DNA from: Scyliorhinus canicula
Lineage: Eukaryota
NCBI RefSeq assembly: GCF_902713615.1
Contig: NC_052148.1
Coordinates: 20,131,888-20,195,887, forward strand
Direction of reading: 5' to 3'
Length of the DNA stretch: 64,000 nucleotides
Part shown: one piece after another, positions 1 to 51,200 of the stretch
Numbering within the stretch: the stretch's first letter is position 1
How the letters are laid out: the number at the start of each line of letters is the position of its first letter
Notes under the pieces: generated by a model
The model's database searches: none
What the model saw: the letters and a program-made list of their open reading frames with translations, nothing else
Told to the model about the DNA's origin: nothing
Made by a program: the position numbers and the translations under genes

Positions 1-689
1 TGTCACTTGTAGCTTCACTGGAACAGCTTGACTCGGGGCACAGTGAGTTCCGAAGTACTATTGCTGGAATGTTGTCAGCGCCTGTAGCCTTTGCAGTATC
101 CAGTGTCTTCAACCTTGGGTGACTTGAATTGGCTGCAAACTGGCACCTGTGAGCTTGACACCTCTGGAGGATCAAGGACCCGGCACTTACTGTGCACAGG
201 GTGGTTGCTATGTTTCCTATGTTACAAAAGTGACTGCACAGGGTTGCAATAAAAGCAATCGCCCTGGCTTGCAGTTAGGTGTAAGACTTCTTTTTTTTTT
301 CCATTTTTTGATTTTCTTCATTCCCCCACCTCCCAAACTCCAATTTGGGTTCATGGGAGTGATGCCTGATTCACCCAAATAATAACCAGTGAGGGCGTGA
401 TCCAGATTGTGGCGGGCGCTACGTGTCGGGTGACTCACACGCAGTTTTGTGTCTGGCGCGAAGCTCGATTTGAACCTCCCTCAAGATGCACCCTGCACAA
501 TGAAATTGGCGCCAGCCTCAACGGGATTGCAATATCACACCCAAAGCACCCCAAGCTCCTTACTCCCAAATTCAGTTCAATGACTGGTTATCTCTGTCGT
601 AGGAAGTATGTGGAAAAGTGACACCTTCTTCAAAAAACTCCTTTCCTTTCATTCCCAAATAAAGGCATTCACTAAAGCCCTGAGATTTG

Positions 690-9210: not shown

Positions 9211-12161
9211 TAGAGATGAGGAGAAATTACTTCTGTCAAAGGCTCGAGAATCTGTGGAATTCACTACCCCAGAGTGTGATCGATGCTGGGACATTGAGTA
9301 AATTTAAGGAGGAGATAGATTTTTAATCAGTAATGGATTGAAGGGTTATGAAGAACAGACAAGAAAGTGGAGTTGATGCCGAGAGGAGATCAGTCATGAT
9401 CATATTGAATAACGGAATGGGCTTGAGGGGCTCCTGGTCCTAGTTCTTCTGTTCTTATGTGATGTAAAAAATACAATAGCCGATTTTTGGAAAGCAAGCT
9501 CCCACCAACAGAAATACAAGGACCAGATAAACCTATTCCTGCCATGTTGATTGTGGAATAAATATTGGGCAGAACTGCTCCTGGGCATAAAAGAGAGAGA
9601 AGACAGGACCTCAATTTAATATCTCAGCAGGAAGACAGCAAGATAGTACCTCTGACACTACAGCACTCCCTCAGCACTGCACTGGGGTTTCAGTCTGCAT
9701 TTTAAATCTGGGGTAGGACTTGAGCCAGCATCCTGGGCTAATAACTCCTTATTTTGTCTTGATGTTGAATGTTGTTTGATAATTCTCCTTTTTGGAGTGC
9801 CTTGCGATGATTTACTGTTTTAAAGGAAATGCAGCAAGATGGCGGCGGAGCGAGGCGACTTTCTGCGAGCTCTTCTTATACTCATTCTAATCTTTTACCT
9901 TTTGTTGCCCTATTATGTATTTTCTTTTATTTCCTTTTCTTTTCATGTACTTAATGATCTGTTTGAGTAGCTCGCAGAAAAATACTTTTCACTGTACCTC
10001 GGTACACGTGACAATAAACAAATCCAAAGGCACCATACGGTGTAAGCTGTTATTGTTCCAGGAGTAGCGTACCAAGGGGAATACACATGTGAATCTAAGT
10101 ATCCTCCTCCTATGACATGAATAATTCAGAGATAGATCATCCTGCCATATGTATCCAGGGAATGGTCAAGCATTAGGAACAAGGAAGAAAGTCTCTGGCT
10201 TCGTAACCTCACAATGTTCCTGTAGATTTCTTGAAGTGAGAGGAAACGCTGTACGTGTGAAATTGGATTGGCTGGCAGAAGCAGATTGAAACAGGGTATA
10301 GAAATTGGAAAGTTAACATGCAGGAAGAGTAGGCAATTAGGAAGGCAAATGGTATGCTGGCCTTTATTGCAAGGTCGGATGAGATGAGGAGGGTCTTCCG
10401 GAGGTGGAGGGGGTCATTAGTCTTTCAAATCATCTACCCCAGAGAGCTGTGGATGTTCAATCCTGAAGAACGCTCCAGGCTGTGATCAATAGATTTTTTG
10501 ATTCGATGGGAATGAAGGTAAATGGGAATCAGATGGAAAAGCGTTCAGGTCAAAGGTCAACCATGATCTTATTGAACTGCAGGACAGGTTCGAAGAGATG
10601 TCTGACCTACTGCTCCTATTTCTTATTTTAATTTGTCCGGTTTAAGATCAGAGGATGTGAGAAAGATAGCAATTGGTTTCCTCTAACCTGACCAGCAGTA
10701 CAGAGACCAGAGTCAGAGGCTCTCTAGTGTTTCTCAATAGCGGAGCACACCCGGCCGATCCGGTGGTCAACAAGGCCTCTCAGGCCTATAGCAAGAATTG
10801 GATTTCCATCCCCATTACCAGGTGCAGACCTGTCGGTGAGAAATTATGGGTCCATGTGAACAACCTGGCCTCAGAGATTCAGCACGGGCCTGGAGTGATC
10901 AGGTGGACCGGACTTACACTCCATCCGGTATGAGCCCAGACCTGGGGGAAGGAGGGAGAAGCGAGTTGACCAGGTATGGGCTTTCAGATACCAGAAAGAA
11001 AACGAGTTAAAGTAGCAGACAGCCTGATTTCAGCCCACTGAGTCTGCAACAAGCTTTGCAGCTGCATAATGTCTCGTACGTGACTCAGCTAGGAACCTGC
11101 TTCTCAACTCAATAAAGCCGAGTGTTTTTCAACAGCTTGTGAGTCAGGGCAGATGAAGTTAATTTTGCCTCAGTTGGATAGGTTTAAATCTGTTGTTTTT
11201 ATTGTGACGAAATCAGCTTCTTCTCTGAGGGGGGGTGGGAGAGCAAATAAATAGAAAAAATAGACGTGCTTACACAGTGGTGCTGTATCAACAATCAAAT
11301 CAATTGTACCTCAGAGCCAGTAAGAGAATAACGTGTATCTCAGTCATGCCTATTCACAGTCAGAAGGCTGTAGGTTCAAGCCCCAGTCCAGAGAATACCA
11401 AATTTAACTTGATGCTCCAGTAAATTCAAGTCGCCATAGTCCGAGATGACAACAGGCTGCTTTCCCCTTTGAGGGGGAGAGCTGACTGGTGGCGATTTAA
11501 CCGGAGGGTCACCACACCAAAGGAATGTCCCAGAAAGAGAAAAACCTTCTCACTAGTCTTCTCATTTCACCAGTTTATTGGTGTTCCATTTTAAAGTATG
11601 CAAAACCAGTTCAGGCCAGTATTTCCCCATTTTACTATTTTTGTTTTCCTCCTGGGTCAGCAATAAGTCTTGAGGGACTGGACTGGATGAAGAGGAGATG
11701 AGGAGGTTACTACAAGATCCTTACTAACCGGAGCCATTACTACTTTTTTCTCAAGATCCTCTGCCAAATTTCTCATGGCTCACTGGCTGCCAAAGGTTGG
11801 GAAACACCAGGTTCTACCTTCCCACCATGCAAAGGAGCCAAGGGCAGAGACGGGGGGGAGAAAGGGTAAAAGTTGGACCTTGAACATCAAAACAGAAGAA
11901 AAAAAAGAATAGGAATAGGCCGTTTGGCTCCTTGAGCCTGCTCCATCTTTCAAAAAGGTCATGGCTGATCTGATTGCGACCTTAACGCTATTTTCCTGCA
12001 TTGCCCGTCATAACCCTTGACCCCCCCATGTCGATCAACAATCTTTGATACATTCAATGACCCAGCCTCCACTGCTCTCCGGAGAAAAAGAGTTTCAAAA
12101 TTTAATGACCCTCTGGAAGAAGAGGTTTCTCCTCGCCTACGTTTTAAATGGGAGACACCAT

Positions 12162-12875
12162 GGGCGGGATTTTTCCCTACCCGGCGGGGCGGGGGTCCCG
12201 GCGTGATGGTGGCATGAACCACTCCGACGTTGGGCCGCCCCAAAGGTGCGGACGTCTCCGCACATTTAGGGGCCAAGCCCTAACATTGAGGGGCTAGGCC
12301 CGTGCCGGAGTGGTTGCGGCCGGCGGGAACGGCCTTTGGCGCCACACCAGCCGGGGCCGAAGAGACTTAGCCGGCCGGCAGAAGTCCGCGCATGCGCTGG
12401 AGCATCAGCGGCTGCTGATGTCATCCCCACGCATGCGCAGGGGAGGGGGTCACCTCCGCCTCCGCCATCGTGAAGACTATGGCGAAGGCGGAAGGAAAAG
12501 AGTGCCCCCAGGGCACAGGCCCGCCCGCCGATCGGTGGGCCCCGATCGTGGGCCAGGCCACCATGGGGGCACCCCCCCAGGGCCAGATCCCACCGCGCCT
12601 CCCCCAGGACCCCGGAGCCCGCCCGCGCCGCCTGGTCCCGCCGGTAAGCTAGGTGTTTTGATCCACGCCGGCGGGAGAGGCCTGTCAGCGGCGGGACTTC
12701 GGCCCAGCGCGGGCCGGAGAATCGCCGGGGGTGGGGGGGGCCCACCGACAGGCGCAGCGCAATTCCCGCCCCCACCGAATCTCTGGTGCCGAAGACTTTG
12801 GGACACGGCGGGGGCGGGATTGACGCCAGCCCCCGGCGATTCTCCGACCCGGCGGCGGGTCGGAGAATCCCGCCC
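12162..12875. mobile_element. GC-rich Harbinger-type MITE
   Basis: TIR GGGCGGGATT...AATCCCGCCC. 3-bp flanks CAT/CTT. Terminal hairpin GATTCTCCGACCCG..CGGGTCGGAGAATC. Inserted in a CR1 relic. Confidence 0.8.
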
Positions 12876-23109: not shown

Positions 23110-23622
23110 ATATTCCCCGTGTCCTGGTCAATATTTATCGTTCTCATTAGCCTTTGGAATTGAAAGCAAATTATTTAACCTTGATAGGGAATTGGCTCAT
23201 TGACAGGGAGAAAGGGCAAATACTTGACAGGAAGTGACAAGTGGCGTCTTGCAAGGATCTGTGTTGGGGCCTCAACTACTCGCTGTATTTATTAAAGATT
23301 CAGATGATGGGATATCAAGCATCTATCCAAGTTTCTGAATGGCACAAAGAATTGTAAACATATTTACAATGTACATAATGTGAAATATGAATAGGTTAAT
23401 TGAATTGGCAAAACTGTGATAAATGCATTTCGGTGCAGACATGTGTGAAGTCATCCACTTTGGACATAAAAATGATTGAACGGTGTACTTTCCAAATGCT
23501 GAGAGGCGCAATATAATGGAGGACCTGAGATATTGGGGGTTCAAGGTACACAGATTATTAAAATATCATAAAGAGGAGCTGAAAACAATCAAAAAGGCTC
23601 ATGGAATGCTAACCTTAATATA
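23110..23622 (+). mobile_element. Old CR1 relic hosting the Penelope palindrome (continues at 28643)
   Basis: QGSVLGP motif. The empty-site join atggaatgctaaccttaatata|ggggctagaa resembles CR1 GMLAFIxRGLE. Confidence 0.75.
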
Positions 23623-23710
23623 ATGATGTGGAGATGCCGGCGTTGGACTGGGGTGAGCACAGTAAGAAGTCTTACAACACCAGGTTAAAGTCCAACAGGT
23701 TTGTTTCAAA

Positions 23711-23745
23711 CACGAGCTTTCGGAGCACGGCTCCTTCTTCAGGTG
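23711..23745 (-). ncRNA. Minimal hammerhead ribozyme (left arm; sense to the host DOCK pre-mRNA)
   Basis: Exact reverse complement of 28557-28591. Confidence 0.8.
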
Positions 23746-23890
23746 AATGGAAAGGCTTGTTCCAGAAATGTTTATATAGACACAGTCAGAGATGCCCCGG
23801 AATGCGAGCACCTGCAGGCAATCAAATCATCAAAGATGCAGAGAGAGAGGTAACTCCAGGTTAAAGAGGTGTGAATTGTCCCAAGCCAGT

Positions 23891-26146
23891 TCAGTCGGTA
23901 GGCCTCTGCAAGTCCAGGCTTGTTGGTGGGGGCCGAATGTAATGCGACATGAATCCCAGATCCCGGTTGAGTCCGCATTCATGCGTGCGGAACTTAGCTA
24001 TAAGTTTTTGCTCAGCAATTTTGCGTTGTCGCGTCTCCTGAAGGCCTCCTTGTAGAATGCTGACCCGGAGATCAGAGGCTGAATGTCCTTGACTGCTGAA
24101 GTGTTCCCCAACTGGAAGGGAACAGTCCTGCCTGTTGATAGTCGCACGATGCCCGTTTATTCGTTGTCGCAGTGACTGCATGGTCTCGCCAATGTACCAC
24201 GCTTCGGGACATCCTTTCCTGCAGCGTATGAGGTAGACTACATTGGTCGAGTCGCACGAGTATGCGCCGCGTACCTGGTGGGTGGTGTTTCCACGTGTAA
24301 TGGTGGTGTCCATGTCGATGATCTGGCATGTCTTGCAGAGATTACCCTGGCAGGGTTTTGTGGTGTTGTGGTTGCTGTTCTGAAGGCTGGGTAATTTGCT
24401 GCAAACAATGGTTTGTTTGAGGTTGCGCGGTTGTTTGAAGGCCAGTAGTGGGGGTGTGGGGATGACCTTGGCAAGATGTCCATCCTCGCTGATGATGTGT
24501 TGGAGGCTGCGAAGAAGATGTCGTAGTTTCTCCGCCCCAGGAAAGCACTGGACGACGAAGGGTACTCTGTCAGTGGTGTCCCGTGTTTGTCTTCTGAGGA
24601 GGTCGGTGCGGTTTTTTGCTGTGGCGCGGTGGAACTGTCGATCAATGAGTCGAGCGCCATATCCCGTTCGTACGAGGGCATCTTTCAGCATCTGTAGGTG
24701 TCTGTTGCGCTCCTCCTTGTCTGAGCAGATCCTGTGTATACGGAGGGCTTGTCCATAGGGGATGGCTTCTTTAATGTGTTTCGGGTGAAAGCTGGAGAAG
24801 TGGAGCATCGTGAGATTATCTGTGGGCTTGCGGTAAAGCGAGGTGCTGAGGTGACCGTCCTTGATGGAGACGAGTGTGTCCAAGAATGGAACTGAATTTG
24901 GAGAATAGTCCATGGTGAGTTTGATGGTGGGATGGAACTTATTGATGTCATCGTGTAGTCGTTTCAGTGATGTCTCGCCGTGGGTCCAAAGGAAAAAAAT
25001 GTCATCGATGTATCTGGTGTATAGCATCGGTTGAAAGTCCTGTGTGGTGAGGAAGTCCTGTTCAAACTTGTGCATGAAGATGTTGGCATATTGAGGTGCA
25101 AATTTGGTCCCCATGGCTGTTCCGTGCATCTGGATGAAGAATTTGTTGTCGAAGGTGAAGACGTTGTGGTCTAGAATGAAACGGATGAGTTGCAGAATTG
25201 CGTCTGGAGATTGGCAGTTGTCGGTGTTGAGGACTGAGGCTGTTGCAGCAATGCCGTCGTCATGGGGGATGCTGGTGTAGAGTGCCGAGACATCCATTGT
25301 GACGAGGAATGTTCCTGGTTCAACTGGTCCATGGGTGCTGAGTTTCTGTAGGAAGTCCGTCGTGTCGCGACAGAAGCTGGGTGTACCTTGTACGATGGGT
25401 TTCAAGATGCCCTCGATGTGGCCAGAGAGGTTCTCACACAGGGTCCCATTGCCTGAAACGATAGGACGGCCTGGTGTGTTGGCCTTGTGTATTTTCGGGA
25501 GGCAGTAGAGATCTCCAATGCGGGGATTACGTGGGATGAGAGCACGTAGGGTGTTCTGAAGGTCTGGATCTAAGGTCTTGATCAGTCTGCTGAGTTGGCG
25601 GATGTGTTCCTTGGTTTGATCTGCGGGTAACTGCCTGTAGTGTTCCTGGTTGTCGAGTTGTCGGTATACTTCTTTGCAGTAGTCTGTTCTGTTCAGTATG
25701 ACGGTGGCCCCTCCTTTGTCTGCTGGTTTGATGACGATGTTGCGGTTGGTCTTGAGAGTGCGGATGGCGTTGCGTTGTGCTTGGGTGACGTTTGAGGCTG
25801 CCTTGTGATTGCGAGTGATGAATCTGGCATTGACACGACTTCTGACGGCTTGAGCATACATGTCGAGTCTAGGGCAGCGGCCTTCCGGAGGGGTCCAATT
25901 TGACTCTTTCCTTTTCGGTTGCTGCACTGCAGATCTCGCGGTCTGCTGTTCCGGTTCATTGGTCGTGTCCCTGGGTTCGCTGTCGGCCTCTTGGGGTCTG
26001 TGGAAGAATTCCCGGAGCCTCATTCGCCTGATGAATTCCTCCGTATCTGCCGCGAGACTGATGGGGTCCATTTTGGTGGTGGTGCAGAAATTGAGCCCTC
26101 TGCTGAGGACTTCGATTTCGTCTGGTTGAAGGGTGTAGTCTGACAA
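23891..26146 (-). CDS. Penelope-like RT + GIY-YIG endonuclease ORF, left arm (5'-truncated; track start is TTG)
   Basis: Motifs IKPADKG, LPKIHK..GRPIVS, MDVSALYTSI, GTAMG, YIDD, Cys linker PCQGNLCKTC and GIY-YIG (NVVYLIRC..WYIGET). 751 codons without a stop. Confidence 0.93.
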   Translation of the reverse strand: MSDYTLQPDEIEVLSRGLNFCTTTKMDPISLAADTEEFIRRMRLREFFHRPQEADSEPRDTTNEPEQQTARSAVQQPKRKESNWTPPEGRCPRLDMYAQAVRSRVNARFITRNHKAASNVTQAQRNAIRTLKTNRNIVIKPADKGGATVILNRTDYCKEVYRQLDNQEHYRQLPADQTKEHIRQLSRLIKTLDPDLQNTLRALIPRNPRIGDLYCLPKIHKANTPGRPIVSGNGTLCENLSGHIEGILKPIVQGTPSFCRDTTDFLQKLSTHGPVEPGTFLVTMDVSALYTSIPHDDGIAATASVLNTDNCQSPDAILQLIRFILDHNVFTFDNKFFIQMHGTAMGTKFAPQYANIFMHKFEQDFLTTQDFQPMLYTRYIDDIFFLWTHGETSLKRLHDDINKFHPTIKLTMDYSPNSVPFLDTLVSIKDGHLSTSLYRKPTDNLTMLHFSSFHPKHIKEAIPYGQALRIHRICSDKEERNRHLQMLKDALVRTGYGARLIDRQFHRATAKNRTDLLRRQTRDTTDRVPFVVQCFPGAEKLRHLLRSLQHIISEDGHLAKVIPTPPLLAFKQPRNLKQTIVCSKLPSLQNSNHNTTKPCQGNLCKTCQIIDMDTTITRGNTTHQVRGAYSCDSTNVVYLIRCRKGCPEAWYIGETMQSLRQRINGHRATINRQDCSLPVGEHFSSQGHSASDLRVSILQGGLQETRQRKIAEQKLIAKFRTHECGLNRDLGFMSHYIRPPPTSLDLQRPTD

Positions 26147-26155
26147 GTTGTCAGC

Positions 26156-28411
26156 TTGTCAGACTACACCCTTCAACCAGACAAAATCGAAGTCCTCAGC
26201 AGAGGGCTCAATTTCTGCACCACCACCAAAATGGACCCCATCAGTCTCGCGGCAGATATGGAGGAATTCATCAGGCGAATGAGGCTCCGGGAATTCTTCC
26301 ACAGACCCCAAGAGGCCGACAGCGAACCCAGGGACACGACCAATGAACCGGAACAGCAGACCGCGAGATCTGCAGTGCAGCAACCGAAAAGGAAAGAGTC
26401 AAATTGGACCCCTCCGGAAGGCCGCTGCCCTAGACTCGACATGTATGCTCAAGCCGTCAGAAGTCGTGTCAATGCCAGATTCATCACTCGCAATCACAAG
26501 GCAGCCTCAAACGTCACCCAAGCACAACGCAACGCCATCCGCACTCTCAAGACCAACCGCAACATCGTCATCAAACCAGCAGACAAAGGAGGGGCCACCG
26601 TCATACTGAACAGAACAGACTACTGCAAAGAAGTATACCGACAACTCGACAACCAGGAACACTACAGGCAGTTACCCGCAGATCCAACCAAGGAACACAT
26701 CCGCCAACTCAGCAGACTGATCAAGACCTTAGATCCAGACCTTCAGAACACCCTACGTGCTCTCATCCCACGTAATCCCCGCATTGGAGATCTCTACTGC
26801 CTCCCGAAAATACACAAGGCCAACACACCAGGCCGTCCTATCGTTTCAGGCAATGGGACCCTGTGTGAGAACCTCTCTGGCCACATCGAGGGCATCTTGA
26901 AACCCATCGTACAAGGTACACCCAGCTTCTGTCGCGACACGACGGACTTCCTACAGAAACTCAGCACCCATGGACCAGTTGAACCAGGAACATTCCTCGT
27001 CACAATGGATGTCTCGGCACTCTACACCAGCATCCCCCATGACGACGGCATTGCTGCAACAGCCTCAGTCCTCAACACCGACAACTGCCAATCTCCAGAC
27101 GCAATTCTGCAACTCATCCGTTTTATTCTAGACCACAACGTCTTCACCTTCGACAACAAATTCTTCATCCAGACGCACGGAACAGCCATGGGGACCAAAT
27201 TTGCACCTCAATATGCCAACATCTTCATGCACAAGTTTGAACAGGACTTCCTCACCACACAGGACTTTCAACCGATGCTATACACCAGATACATCGATGA
27301 CATTTTTTTCCTTTGGACCCACGGCGAGACATCACTGAAACGACTACACGATGACATCAATAAGTTCCATCCCACCATCAAACTCACCATGGACTATTCT
27401 CCAAATTCAGTTCCATTCTTGGACACACTCGTCTCCATCAAGGACGGTCACCTCAGCACCTCGCTTTACCGCAAGCCCACAGATAATCTCACGATGCTCC
27501 ACTTCTCCAGCTTTCACCCGAAACACATTAAAGAAGCCATCCCCTATGGACAAGCCCTCCGTATACACAGGATCTGCTCAGACAAGGAGGAGCGCAACAG
27601 ACACCTACAGATGCTGAAAGATGCCCTCGTACGAACGGGATATGGCGCTCGACTCATTGATCGACAGTTCCACCGCGCCACAGCAAAAAACCGCACCGAC
27701 CTCCTCAGAAGACAAACACGGGACACCACTGACAGAGTACCCTTCGTCGTCCAGTACTTTCCTGGGGCGGAGAAACTACGACATCTTCTTCGCAGCCTCC
27801 AACACATCATCAGCGAGGATGGACATCTTGCCAAGGTCATCCCCACACCCCCACTACTGGCCTTCAAACAACCGCGCAACCTCAAACAAACCATTGTTTG
27901 CAGCAAATTACCCAGCCTTCAGAACAGCAACCACAACACCACAAAACCCTGCCAGGGTAATCTCTGCAAGACATGCCAGATCATCGACATGGACACCACC
28001 ATTACACGTGGAAACACCACCCACCAGGTATGCGGCGCATACTCGTGCGACTCGACCAATGTAGTCTACCTCATACGCTGCAGGAAAGGATGTCCCGAAG
28101 CGTGGTACATTGGCGAGACCATGCAGACACTGCGACAACGAATAAACGGGCATCGTGCGACTATCAACAGGCAGGACTGTTCCCTTCCAGTTGGGGAACA
28201 CTTCAGCAGTCAAGGACATTCAGCCTCTGATCTCCGGGTCAGCATTCTACAAGGAGGCCTTCAGGAGACGCGACAACGCAAAATTGCTGAGCAAAAACTT
28301 ATAGCTAAGTTCCGCACGCATGAATGCGGGCTCAACCGGGATCTGGGATTCATGTCGCATTACATTCGGCCCCCACCAACAAGCCTGGACTTGCAGAGGC
28401 CTACCGACTGA
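26156..28411 (+). CDS. Penelope-like RT + GIY-YIG endonuclease ORF, right arm (5'-truncated; track start is TTG)
   Basis: Same motifs as the left arm. Seven amino-acid differences seen between the two arms. Confidence 0.93.
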   Translation: MSDYTLQPDKIEVLSRGLNFCTTTKMDPISLAADMEEFIRRMRLREFFHRPQEADSEPRDTTNEPEQQTARSAVQQPKRKESNWTPPEGRCPRLDMYAQAVRSRVNARFITRNHKAASNVTQAQRNAIRTLKTNRNIVIKPADKGGATVILNRTDYCKEVYRQLDNQEHYRQLPADPTKEHIRQLSRLIKTLDPDLQNTLRALIPRNPRIGDLYCLPKIHKANTPGRPIVSGNGTLCENLSGHIEGILKPIVQGTPSFCRDTTDFLQKLSTHGPVEPGTFLVTMDVSALYTSIPHDDGIAATASVLNTDNCQSPDAILQLIRFILDHNVFTFDNKFFIQTHGTAMGTKFAPQYANIFMHKFEQDFLTTQDFQPMLYTRYIDDIFFLWTHGETSLKRLHDDINKFHPTIKLTMDYSPNSVPFLDTLVSIKDGHLSTSLYRKPTDNLTMLHFSSFHPKHIKEAIPYGQALRIHRICSDKEERNRHLQMLKDALVRTGYGARLIDRQFHRATAKNRTDLLRRQTRDTTDRVPFVVQYFPGAEKLRHLLRSLQHIISEDGHLAKVIPTPPLLAFKQPRNLKQTIVCSKLPSLQNSNHNTTKPCQGNLCKTCQIIDMDTTITRGNTTHQVCGAYSCDSTNVVYLIRCRKGCPEAWYIGETMQTLRQRINGHRATINRQDCSLPVGEHFSSQGHSASDLRVSILQGGLQETRQRKIAEQKLIAKFRTHECGLNRDLGFMSHYIRPPPTSLDLQRPTD

Positions 28412-28556
28412 ACTGGCTTGGGACAATTCACACCTCTTTAACCTGGAGTTACCTCTCTCTCTGCATCTTTGATGATTTGATTGCCTGCAGGTGCTCGCAT
28501 TCCGGGGCATCTCTGACTGTGTCTATATAAACATTTCTGGAACAAGCCTTTCCATT

Positions 28557-28591
28557 CACCTGAAGAAGGAGCCGTGCTCCGAAAGCTCGTG
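28557..28591 (+). ncRNA. Minimal type I hammerhead ribozyme in the Penelope 3' region (right arm)
   Basis: cac-CTGAAGA-a-GGAGC cgt GCTCC-GAA-AGCT-C-gtg: CUGANGA and GAAA core, 5-bp stem II, palindromic AGCT stem III, cac/gtg stem I. Confidence 0.8.
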
Positions 28592-28692
28592 TTTGAAACA
28601 AACCTGTTGGACTTTAACCTGGTGTTGTAAGACTTCTTACTGAACCTTAATATAGGGGCTAGAAGTCATACTTCAACAATACAATGCATGTC

Positions 28693-50129: not shown

Positions 50130-51200
50130 CCAACTAGTGGAGATCACAGCAGACCGCAATTATGCAGAGCACCCTCTAGGCACTGTACTGGAGGGCGCCC
50201 ACTGACCAGTCCAGGCACCGCAACTGCATCAGTCCGAATGCCTGATTGACTAGCATGCGCATTGATGCAAGAGCCACGTTGTAGCGAGTCACCACAAGTG
50301 TTTGTGGCTGCTGCACTGGCGTTGTTAACAATCTCCTGAGTGAGTACCCCTATCCCTGAGGAGCTATTCCTTCAGCCGCTGCTCTCCCTCAAAAATGTCT
50401 GGGATCTGCGAGTTCTCCAAGATGTAATTGTCATGGACTCTTCCCGGGAAACAGGCACGCCTCTGCATTATGCGCATTGTGTGGTCACAAAAGATCTGGA
50501 CATTGAGGGATGCCTGGCAAATGGGCGAAGCCCATGGCCTTGGCATCCGGGCTCATCTCATCCCAGTCCATGTTTATAAACCAACAGGTTTGTTTCAAAC
50601 ACGAGCTTTCGGAGCACGGATCCTTCTTCAGGTGAGAAGAAGGAGCCTCTCACCTGAAGAAGGAGCCGTGCTCCGAAAGCTCGTGTTTGAAACAAACCTG
50701 TTGGACTTTAACCTGGTGTTGTAAGACTTCTTACTGTGCTCACCCCAGTCCAACGCCGGCATCTCCACATCATGTTTATAAACACGTGGGTACTCGCAAA
50801 AAGGGCATCTATTACTTCCCTTATGCATTTGTGTGCAGCTGACAGGGAAATGCCACATGCGGCACTGGTGCTACCCTGAAATGAGCCACTTGCAGAGGTT
50901 CAGAGCGGCGGTAAGTTTAAGGGCCTTGGGAAGTGGGTGTCCTCCCATTCCATGTGGTGCCAGCTCTTGCAGGACTTGGCAAGATGGTCCACCCATCCCC
51001 TCAGGACAGACACAGTCTTCTCTGACATTGAAGCTCCGATATCTGCAGGTAGGATATCCGGCATCGGAAGGCCCTTTACCGGGAGGGTCACCTACAAGGC
51101 TCCACCATCTGTGATGCTGCTCCCAGAACAGCTATGGGCCCAGCCTCCTCCTCCTCTGCAAGACGCTGGTCCTGGCCGCGTACAGCGACACGTCGTCCCT
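50130..51200 (-). pseudogene. Decayed Harbinger/PIF (HARBI1-like) transposase
   Basis: Fragments LKLTAALN..SGSFQG..CGIS, GFA..AGIPQ and SLNVQIFCDH..FPGRVHD.YIL..LLRDRGY, with stops and frameshifts. Interrupted by the mini-Penelope. Boundaries approximate. Confidence 0.75.
50581..50773. mobile_element. Miniature palindromic Penelope 3'-end insertion with two opposed hammerheads
   Basis: 50581-50637 is inverted with 50648-50704, and the plus arm continues to the element end ...GGCATCTCCACATCAT. Flanked by (CAT)GTTTATAAAC at 50569-50581 and 50771-50783. Nearly identical to the 3' ends of the large palindrome. Confidence 0.92.

Follow-up and report, generated by a model that had tools for sequence, protein, structure and literature searches.

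A miniature palindromic insertion derived from a Penelope-like element (PLE) lies at positions 50569–50783 of the window, the 64-kb stretch of the Scyliorhinus canicula genome analysed here. Coordinates are those of the + strand, and positions within the element are counted with the C of CUGA, the first box of its hammerhead ribozyme motif, as 1. Within an exact 13-bp direct repeat, the mini insertion, or mini, has an antisense arm of 54 nt, then 14 nt of filler and a sense arm of 124 nt. The two arms stand head to head and fold 4 nt upstream of CUGA.

The direct repeat represents a target-site duplication (TSD). Its left copy (CATGTTTATAAAC) occupies 50569–50581, with a certain core at 50572–50581, and its right copy, an exact repeat of the left, occupies 50771–50783. 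The length of the duplication is given as 10–13 bp because its first CAT, the first 3 nt of the right copy, overlaps the element's own end. The duplication abuts both ends of the unit, and two copies of its core, GTTTATAAAC, flank the 190-bp insertion. This is the sole exact 13-mer direct repeat at a spacing of 150–260 nt in the whole 64-kb window, so it is not due to chance. The 10-bp core is a palindrome by itself, and therefore contributes 10–11 bp of extra apparent inverted repeat at the outer ends.

The complete sense arm (50650–50773, + strand) comprises the last 124 nt of the PLE, positions -3 to 120. It is identical at 124 of 124 positions to the terminus of a large copy of the element at 23746–23623, including the final bases (...CACATCAT). 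Its outer portion carries a conserved stem-loop, GTAAG-ACTT-CTTAC (50721–50736, + strand), which reaches the canonical tail-less terminus of the element at position 83. The stem-loop itself, at 50721–50734 and again at 28625–28638 in the large copy, has a 5-bp stem and stops 2 nt short of this terminus. Beyond it lies a 37-nt tail (50737–50773, + strand) that is identical to 23659–23623 and is present on the complete arm only. The short recessed arm (50582–50635, − strand) covers element positions -3 to 50/51 and is antisense on the + strand. Missing from it are the outer 69 nt, with the conserved stem-loop and the tail among them, and over ~54–55 nt it shows 98% identity (1 mismatch) to 23692–23746 and 28610–28556. 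The mini has the 37-nt tail on its right arm only; the other arm ends at position 51, compared with position 83 in the large copy and in copies from another shark, Heptranchias perlo.

The 14-nt filler at the junction (50636–50649, + strand) was delimited from direct and inverted repeats and from comparison with the parent sequence. Its first 12 nt (50636–50647) are an exact direct copy of 50656–50667, which are hammerhead positions 3–14, and it ends in TC, which pairs with the GA at 50636–50637. The filler junction has a single occurrence in the 64-kb window. A repeat finder reports the inverted repeat as 50574–50637 against 50648–50711, with 64 nt on each side, 94% complementarity and a 10-nt gap between. 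Taken as RNA, the mini has a predicted fold of -125 kcal/mol (z = -15.5 relative to shuffles).

The repeat finder and the alignment to the parent together bear out the original prediction for this locus, which described two head-to-head Penelope 3' ends, one complete and the other recessed by 69 nt, folded just upstream of the hammerhead and flanked by a direct repeat of 10–13 bp; that repeat proved exact, and unique at its spacing in the window. The spacer was also said to re-copy hammerhead sequence, and does so over exactly 12 nt. Slippage, the term used for this, is a fair label, although template switching describes it better.

A miniature inverted-repeat transposable element (MITE) or foldback DNA transposon was considered and rejected, since the right arm runs 69 nt past the inverted repeat before the TSD is reached and the unit is made of PLE sequence. 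A chimeric read, or one folded back on itself, could also yield such a structure in the assembly, palindromes being a generally known failure mode of long-read libraries. However, the arms are asymmetric and differ by a mismatch, a filler separates them and an exact duplication flanks them, and analogous structures occur in the independent assembly of another shark. The chance of an artefact appears negligible.

Around the mini, no paralogue of the flanks was found within the 64-kb window, and the flanking open reading frames (ORFs) have no Pfam match. A tail-like 14-mer in the left flank (50557–50570 against 50739–50752, 13/14 matching; CTCAYCCCAGTCCA) was examined as possible mimicry of the endonuclease target and rejected, its score being reached by 121 of 500 shuffles and by 13 of 58 real control segments.

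The parent element and its 5-kb palindrome

At 23611–28654 lies the likely source-family copy. This palindrome of the same element is 5 kb long and head to head, and a 12-bp duplication, AACCTTAATATA, flanks it. The body spans 23623–28642, with arms at 23660–26150 and 26152–28642 and a 1-nt centre. The arms show 10 mismatches over 2491 nt, the first of them 2 nt from the centre, and because they are imperfectly identical the palindrome is read as a real, slightly aged insertion rather than a fold-back read artefact. One arm has a 37-nt terminal extension and the other is 37 nt shorter, and this recess corresponds to the tail. The asymmetry that had been proposed as common to both copies in the window accordingly holds for the one-sided form of the tail, but not for the size of the recess (37 nt for the large palindrome, 69 nt for the mini).

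The parent ORF of 751 aa is open to the fold point. It has an RVT_1 match, together with a GIY-YIG match of 20 bits (cut-off 22.6) and the motif VVY...WYIGET. Its closest relatives are uncharacterised shark proteins from Scyliorhinus torazame (91%), H. perlo (85%) and Mustelus asterias (82%); the shark homologues belong to a very large PLE family and carry the PLE-associated Pfam domain set. On the strength of the RVT_1 match, the GIY-YIG motif and these shark relatives, the parent is a canonical endonuclease-positive PLE, combining a reverse transcriptase (RT) with a GIY-YIG endonuclease. The mini, judged by its sequence, consists of the last 124 nt of this parent element and an inverted copy of part of them.

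A TATA-like box lies at 28524–28531 (+ strand), 30–32 nt upstream of position -3, and may serve as the promoter of the element; its mirror copy in the large palindrome is found near 23771–23778. An A/T-rich box of this kind occurs 33–45 nt upstream of CUGA in every full pseudo-long terminal repeat (pLTR) that was compared, at L001 12141, L001 18400, L002 14810, L005 9100 and L008 99, where L008 is a metagenome contig and the other numbers denote loci of H. perlo. The box is not present in the mini, which begins downstream of its position and so has no element promoter.

Insertion units in Heptranchias perlo

The census of insertion units covers nine H. perlo loci (197 kb in total), in which all terminal fragments were mapped and 13 units recognised. 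Nine of the 13 are single, with three in L001 and the others in L003, L004, L006, L007, L009 and L010, and one is tandem (L005). The remaining three are inverted, at L001 9645–9840, at L006 3408–3630 and in L002. Outer ends cluster at 83–87, just past the conserved stem-loop in copies without a tail, and at 120–123 in copies with one. The terminus at position 83 is also the end of the large palindrome at window position 28642, of the copies in L003, L004, L007 and L009 and, in the L001 and L006 minis, of the arm without a tail.

The unit at L001 9645–9840 is a mini palindrome with an 11-bp duplication, ACTTTGTGCTA, and arms that cover 123..40 and -3..87. It lies 100 bp upstream of a 5'-truncated PLE (9940–12296) that has its own duplication of ~8 bp (TTAGTTTA); these are two independent neighbouring insertions. 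The unit at L006 3408–3630 is likewise a mini palindrome with an 11-bp duplication, ATAATAGATTA, and its arms cover 123..2 and -3..84. The L006 arms share private variants, and of the seven differences between them five fall in helix II of the hammerhead, including a compensatory A-U versus C-G pair. Two RNA templates, or else a concentration of mutations around the palindrome's centre, would account for these differences; the compensatory pair suggests two templates. In L002 an 84-nt tail-less arm stands head to head with a 2.3-kb body that ends in the tail.

When the two copies in the window are included, 5 of 15 units are inverted, and every one of them pairs a tail-bearing arm with an arm that has no tail. 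In four of the five, the arm without a tail extends to the canonical tail-less site; that of the window mini falls 32 nt short of it. Inverted forms are a regular product of this element family. The suggestion that the palindrome is systematic rather than accidental is upheld by these counts, and inverted configurations are not rare among the copies classified, whether in H. perlo alone (3 of 13) or with the window added. This is a confirmation of a published feature of PLEs (PMC8557442, PMC4209133) and not a discovery, and the mini is an extreme short member of this known insertion form rather than a new mobile hairpin.

The inner ends of the short arms are also clustered. They fall between -3 and +2 in both arms of the window mini, both arms of the L006 mini and the sense arm of the L001 mini. 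In L002 the inner end of the short arm lies within +1 to +8, at a microhomology junction. Among the three minis examined, no two have the same internal junction and each has a TSD of its own, so they probably arose de novo rather than as members of an amplified hairpin family.

The recurrence of this layout also bears on a possible later origin of the inverted segment. A plain 124-nt solo insertion might have come first, with its inner 54 nt inverted and duplicated afterwards by a template switch at a replication fork or by a repair error. Templated fillers such as that in the mini are generally known to be typical of replication template switching and of end joining by polymerase theta as well. 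However, the inverted segment sits exactly between the left TSD and the 5' end of the element, neither of which has been lost, and this arrangement recurs at independent sites in two species, with ends at canonical start sites. Such a two-stage history seems very unlikely.

Origin of the palindrome

The mini is probably a young, dead-on-arrival integration by-product of an autonomous shark PLE, made once at this site. The favoured route is target-primed reverse transcription from both strands, after which the cDNA ends would be joined by template switching. The GIY-YIG endonuclease would nick both strands of an AT-rich site, 10–13 bp apart, and each free 3' end would prime reverse transcription on a short leader or terminal segment of the element RNA. 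On the bottom strand, a start at the distal site would produce the tail-bearing 124-nt arm. On the top strand, a start at a non-canonical internal site (~51) would produce the 54-nt arm. Both cDNAs would stop at the same point, 4 nt upstream of CUGA, which is taken as the 5' end of the RNA and would correspond to a transcription start ~30 nt downstream of the TATA box of the element. Template switching would join the two like-ended cDNAs and leave the 14-nt filler re-copied from the hammerhead, and repair would then fix the palindrome and the TSD.

The same structure could be derived from a single target-primed cDNA that snaps back on itself. Such a cDNA would run from the tail to -3, add GA, re-copy 12 nt and fold back on a 2-bp GA/TC contact; 54 nt would then be self-copied outward and joined across the staggered break, with the recess marking the point where self-copying stopped. 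Several features agree with this proposal, including the 10-nt loop bounded by GA/TC, the common inner base at which both arms of the window mini end, the difference of 1 in 54 nt between them, and the 1-nt centre of the large palindrome. An outer end at 51 would also be natural if self-copying had aborted. However, neither in the L001 unit nor in that of L002 can one arm have been copied from the other, and therefore snap-back of a single cDNA cannot be general. A second arm with a canonical tail-less end, as in four of the five inverted units, is predicted by priming at both nicks and not by snap-back, and both strands are extended in vitro (PMC11167929). For these reasons, and because the L006 arms suggest two RNA templates, two-strand priming is favoured. 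Snap-back appears rather unlikely overall, but for the window mini in particular it is a live alternative. Under two-strand priming and snap-back alike, no fewer than two template switches are required for the 14-nt filler.

Several observations weigh against two-strand priming as the origin of the mini. The recessed arm starts at ~51 and not at 83, and no H. perlo copy ends there; this points either to atypical priming in one of the two events or to resection of the end before it was joined. The common inner end of the two arms and the single base by which they differ are explained equally well by snap-back of one cDNA. A local quasi-palindrome, TCA-CC-TGA, could alone favour joining near -3. 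In addition, the census is small (15 units including the two in the window), is drawn mostly from another shark species, and covers loci that were picked for an annotated PLE ORF.

The position of the inner ends suggests that the element RNA starts near -3, downstream of the TATA box, and a start there would account for short arms that end ~4 nt upstream of the ribozyme. Hammerhead cleavage was considered as the origin of the shared inner end and rejected: the predicted cut follows position 29 and is not at the fold, which places it ~32 nt downstream of -3, where the arms start.

A further, tentative possibility is that the minis represent the PLE equivalent of strong-stop cDNA, in which synthesis from start sites in the leader would run off at the cap site while both nicked strands prime. 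Full-length PLE mRNA would carry the internal start sites twice, once in the 5' leader and once at the 3' end, and initiation at the leader copy would run off after 87–124 nt, just upstream of the hammerhead. If this is true, mini palindromes would constitute an in vivo record of two-strand priming, of the two start sites and of the transcription start. As a corollary, a mini that is transcribed would give a predicted 64-bp hairpin RNA, which could feed small-RNA silencing of the leader of the family.

PLE integration is poorly understood, and the cause of the inverted repeats and one-sided tail is a specialist question. Young, clean minis record a single integration event, and within 200 bp they show both outer starts, the inner stop and the scar of joining. 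The pairing of tail-bearing with tail-less arms and the discrete inner end beside the start predicted from the TATA box are regularities that merit a genome-wide test, and counting such units across shark genomes could provide an in vivo test of what in vitro work shows only for one lizard element.

Minimal hammerheads and related systems

The mini contains one hammerhead motif on each strand. The + strand motif (50654–50682) was found as a descriptor match to the minimal type I hammerhead, with a predicted cut after 50682. It consists of CUGAAGA with an unpaired A after A9, a 5-bp helix II that opens with G10.1-C11.1, GAAA, a palindromic GC at 15.2-16.2, U and C17. It has no helix III and agrees with all the published criteria for minimal PLE hammerheads (PMC4209133). 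The minus-strand copy (50603–50631) was recognised as a 30-mer match with 1 mismatch; a G-to-U change breaks one pair of helix II, and the strict helix II descriptor is not passed. The label "double-hammerhead" given in the original prediction is appropriate in so far as each strand has one motif. It does not extend to two motifs in one transcript, the minus-strand copy has its helix II mismatch, and the Rfam hammerhead models match neither copy.

In an alignment of 10 copies from the window, H. perlo and one metagenomic PLE, the core columns are invariant in all 10. Helix II is paired in 98% of cells, and both sides have changed at four of its five pairs. None of 500 shuffles reaches the observed covariation score, and slid controls are 24–59% paired. 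The invariant core and the compensatory changes in helix II argue that the PLE hammerhead motif is real and structurally constrained in the family. Rfam hammerhead models give no match at gathering score in the window and none at E <= 10 in 50450–50900, as expected for a motif that has no helix III. Sub-threshold Rfam matches to plant and animal microRNA (miRNA) precursors and to small RNA models at 50593–50692 (MIR1882, 47 bits against a gathering score of 107) were dismissed, as they are produced solely by the long stem. Automated annotation could nevertheless mistake such minis for miRNA genes. Units of this kind should be labelled truncated PLE insertions, and not microRNA-like hairpins, MITEs or retrozymes.

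Non-LTR retrozyme hammerheads of animals are reported, from the De la Pena laboratory in 2020, to dimerise and yield circular RNAs. The mini resembles these retrozymes in being a short, non-coding sequence derived from a PLE pLTR with a type I hammerhead, and it had been proposed that such units behave as a non-autonomous, retrozyme-like hairpin family that is transcribed, processed by its hammerheads and re-inserted. An origin of animal non-LTR retrozymes from PLE pLTRs has been proposed in a preprint that describes them as tandem head-to-tail units only (Li et al. 2026, bioRxiv 10.64898/2026.07.22.740005). The long arm of the mini still has both the tail and the region of the stem-loop, from which reverse transcription is initiated. 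However, the mini is a single inverted pair with no tandem partner and no second sense ribozyme. Its short arm has no start-site stem-loop, and neither a TATA box nor any other promoter lies inside it. A single instance of the junction is present in the window, each of the three minis examined has its own junction and duplication, and the long arm is identical to an autonomous copy 22 kb away, which also weighs against a non-autonomous reading. Each strand offers one sense minimal hammerhead, a type reported to be inactive as a monomer and to need a dimer (PMC4209133), and published minimal hammerheads cleave poorly, doing so as dimers or with protein only (PMC4209133, PMC11167929). In the predicted RNA fold the hammerhead is hidden within the 64-bp duplex, at -125 kcal/mol, and the minus-strand motif has a mismatch in helix II. 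A mobile, retrozyme-like hairpin is highly improbable, and this part of the original prediction is set aside.

Complex tandem and inverted PLE insertions are said to go back to Evgen'ev & Arkhipova 2005 and Arkhipova 2006. In PLE insertions the 5' end is often occupied by an inverted, 5'-truncated copy, and a tail of 30–40 bp is present at one end only (PMC8557442, Craig et al. 2021). The shark units share with these an inverted 5'-truncated copy that abuts the sense copy, a one-sided tail, a TSD at an AT-rich site, a hammerhead in the terminal repeat region, and a parent that pairs an RT with a GIY-YIG domain at the C terminus. The mini differs in that its arms are cut to 54 and 124 nt with no coding sequence left, its tail-less arm is a further 32 nt short, and a 14-nt templated filler lies at its centre.

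Dual minimal hammerheads that lie 100–700 bp apart on opposite strands in Schistosoma mansoni have been read as truncated PLEs (Cervera & De la Pena 2014, PMC4209133). They resemble the mini in having two PLE minimal motifs close together on opposite strands, with a bulged base after A9, G10.1-C11.1 and the palindromic 15.2-16.2. The S. mansoni case is described in one sentence, without anatomy, duplications or mechanism, whereas the shark mini has its junction, the ends of its arms and its duplication mapped.

Twin priming of L1 elements, reportedly described by Ostertag & Kazazian in 2001, is said to involve priming from the second nicked strand as well, with an inverted 5' segment inside one duplication and a microhomology junction. 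The mini would be similar in that both nicked strands prime and an inverted segment lies within one duplication. However, the L1 segments come from different parts of one RNA and yield an inversion rather than a palindrome, whereas both arms of the mini come from the same terminal segment, with dedicated internal start sites.

The layout of the shark leader is most completely represented by L005 8909–12277, a full-length partial-tandem H. perlo copy with the order pLTR-ORF-pLTR. The ATG of its ORF overlaps the last bases of the tail (...CACATCATGG), and therefore the distal start site coincides with the start codon in this shark family. In L008 1–260, an ENA metagenome contig that carries a PLE with 63% protein identity, a TATA-like box and a minimal hammerhead are followed by ~115 nt and then an ATG, and helix II is fully covaried (GAGCU/AGCUC). 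As L008 has the same layout, the organisation reaches beyond the two sharks. The conserved shark terminal block itself returned nothing in the metagenome scans.

The purified protein of PAc, a Poseidon element of Anolis, cleaves and extends both DNA strands at AT-rich sites in vitro (Frangieh et al. 2024, PMC11167929). Reverse transcription begins at two internal RNA start sites, and the spacing between them equals the tail (PMC11167929). The shark family would have in common with PAc the AT-rich sites with both strands cleaved and extended, two start sites spaced by the tail, and a hammerhead ~85–120 nt upstream of them. It differs in the position of the ORF, which starts inside hammerhead stem II in PAc and directly after the tail in the shark family (L005). 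The formation of inverted repeats was not demonstrated in the PAc study (PMC11167929). A start-site stem-loop has been described for PAc, and the shark GTAAG-ACTT-CTTAC stem-loop, which occurs as a compensatory GTAAA/TTTAC variant in an H. perlo subfamily, is a candidate counterpart of it.

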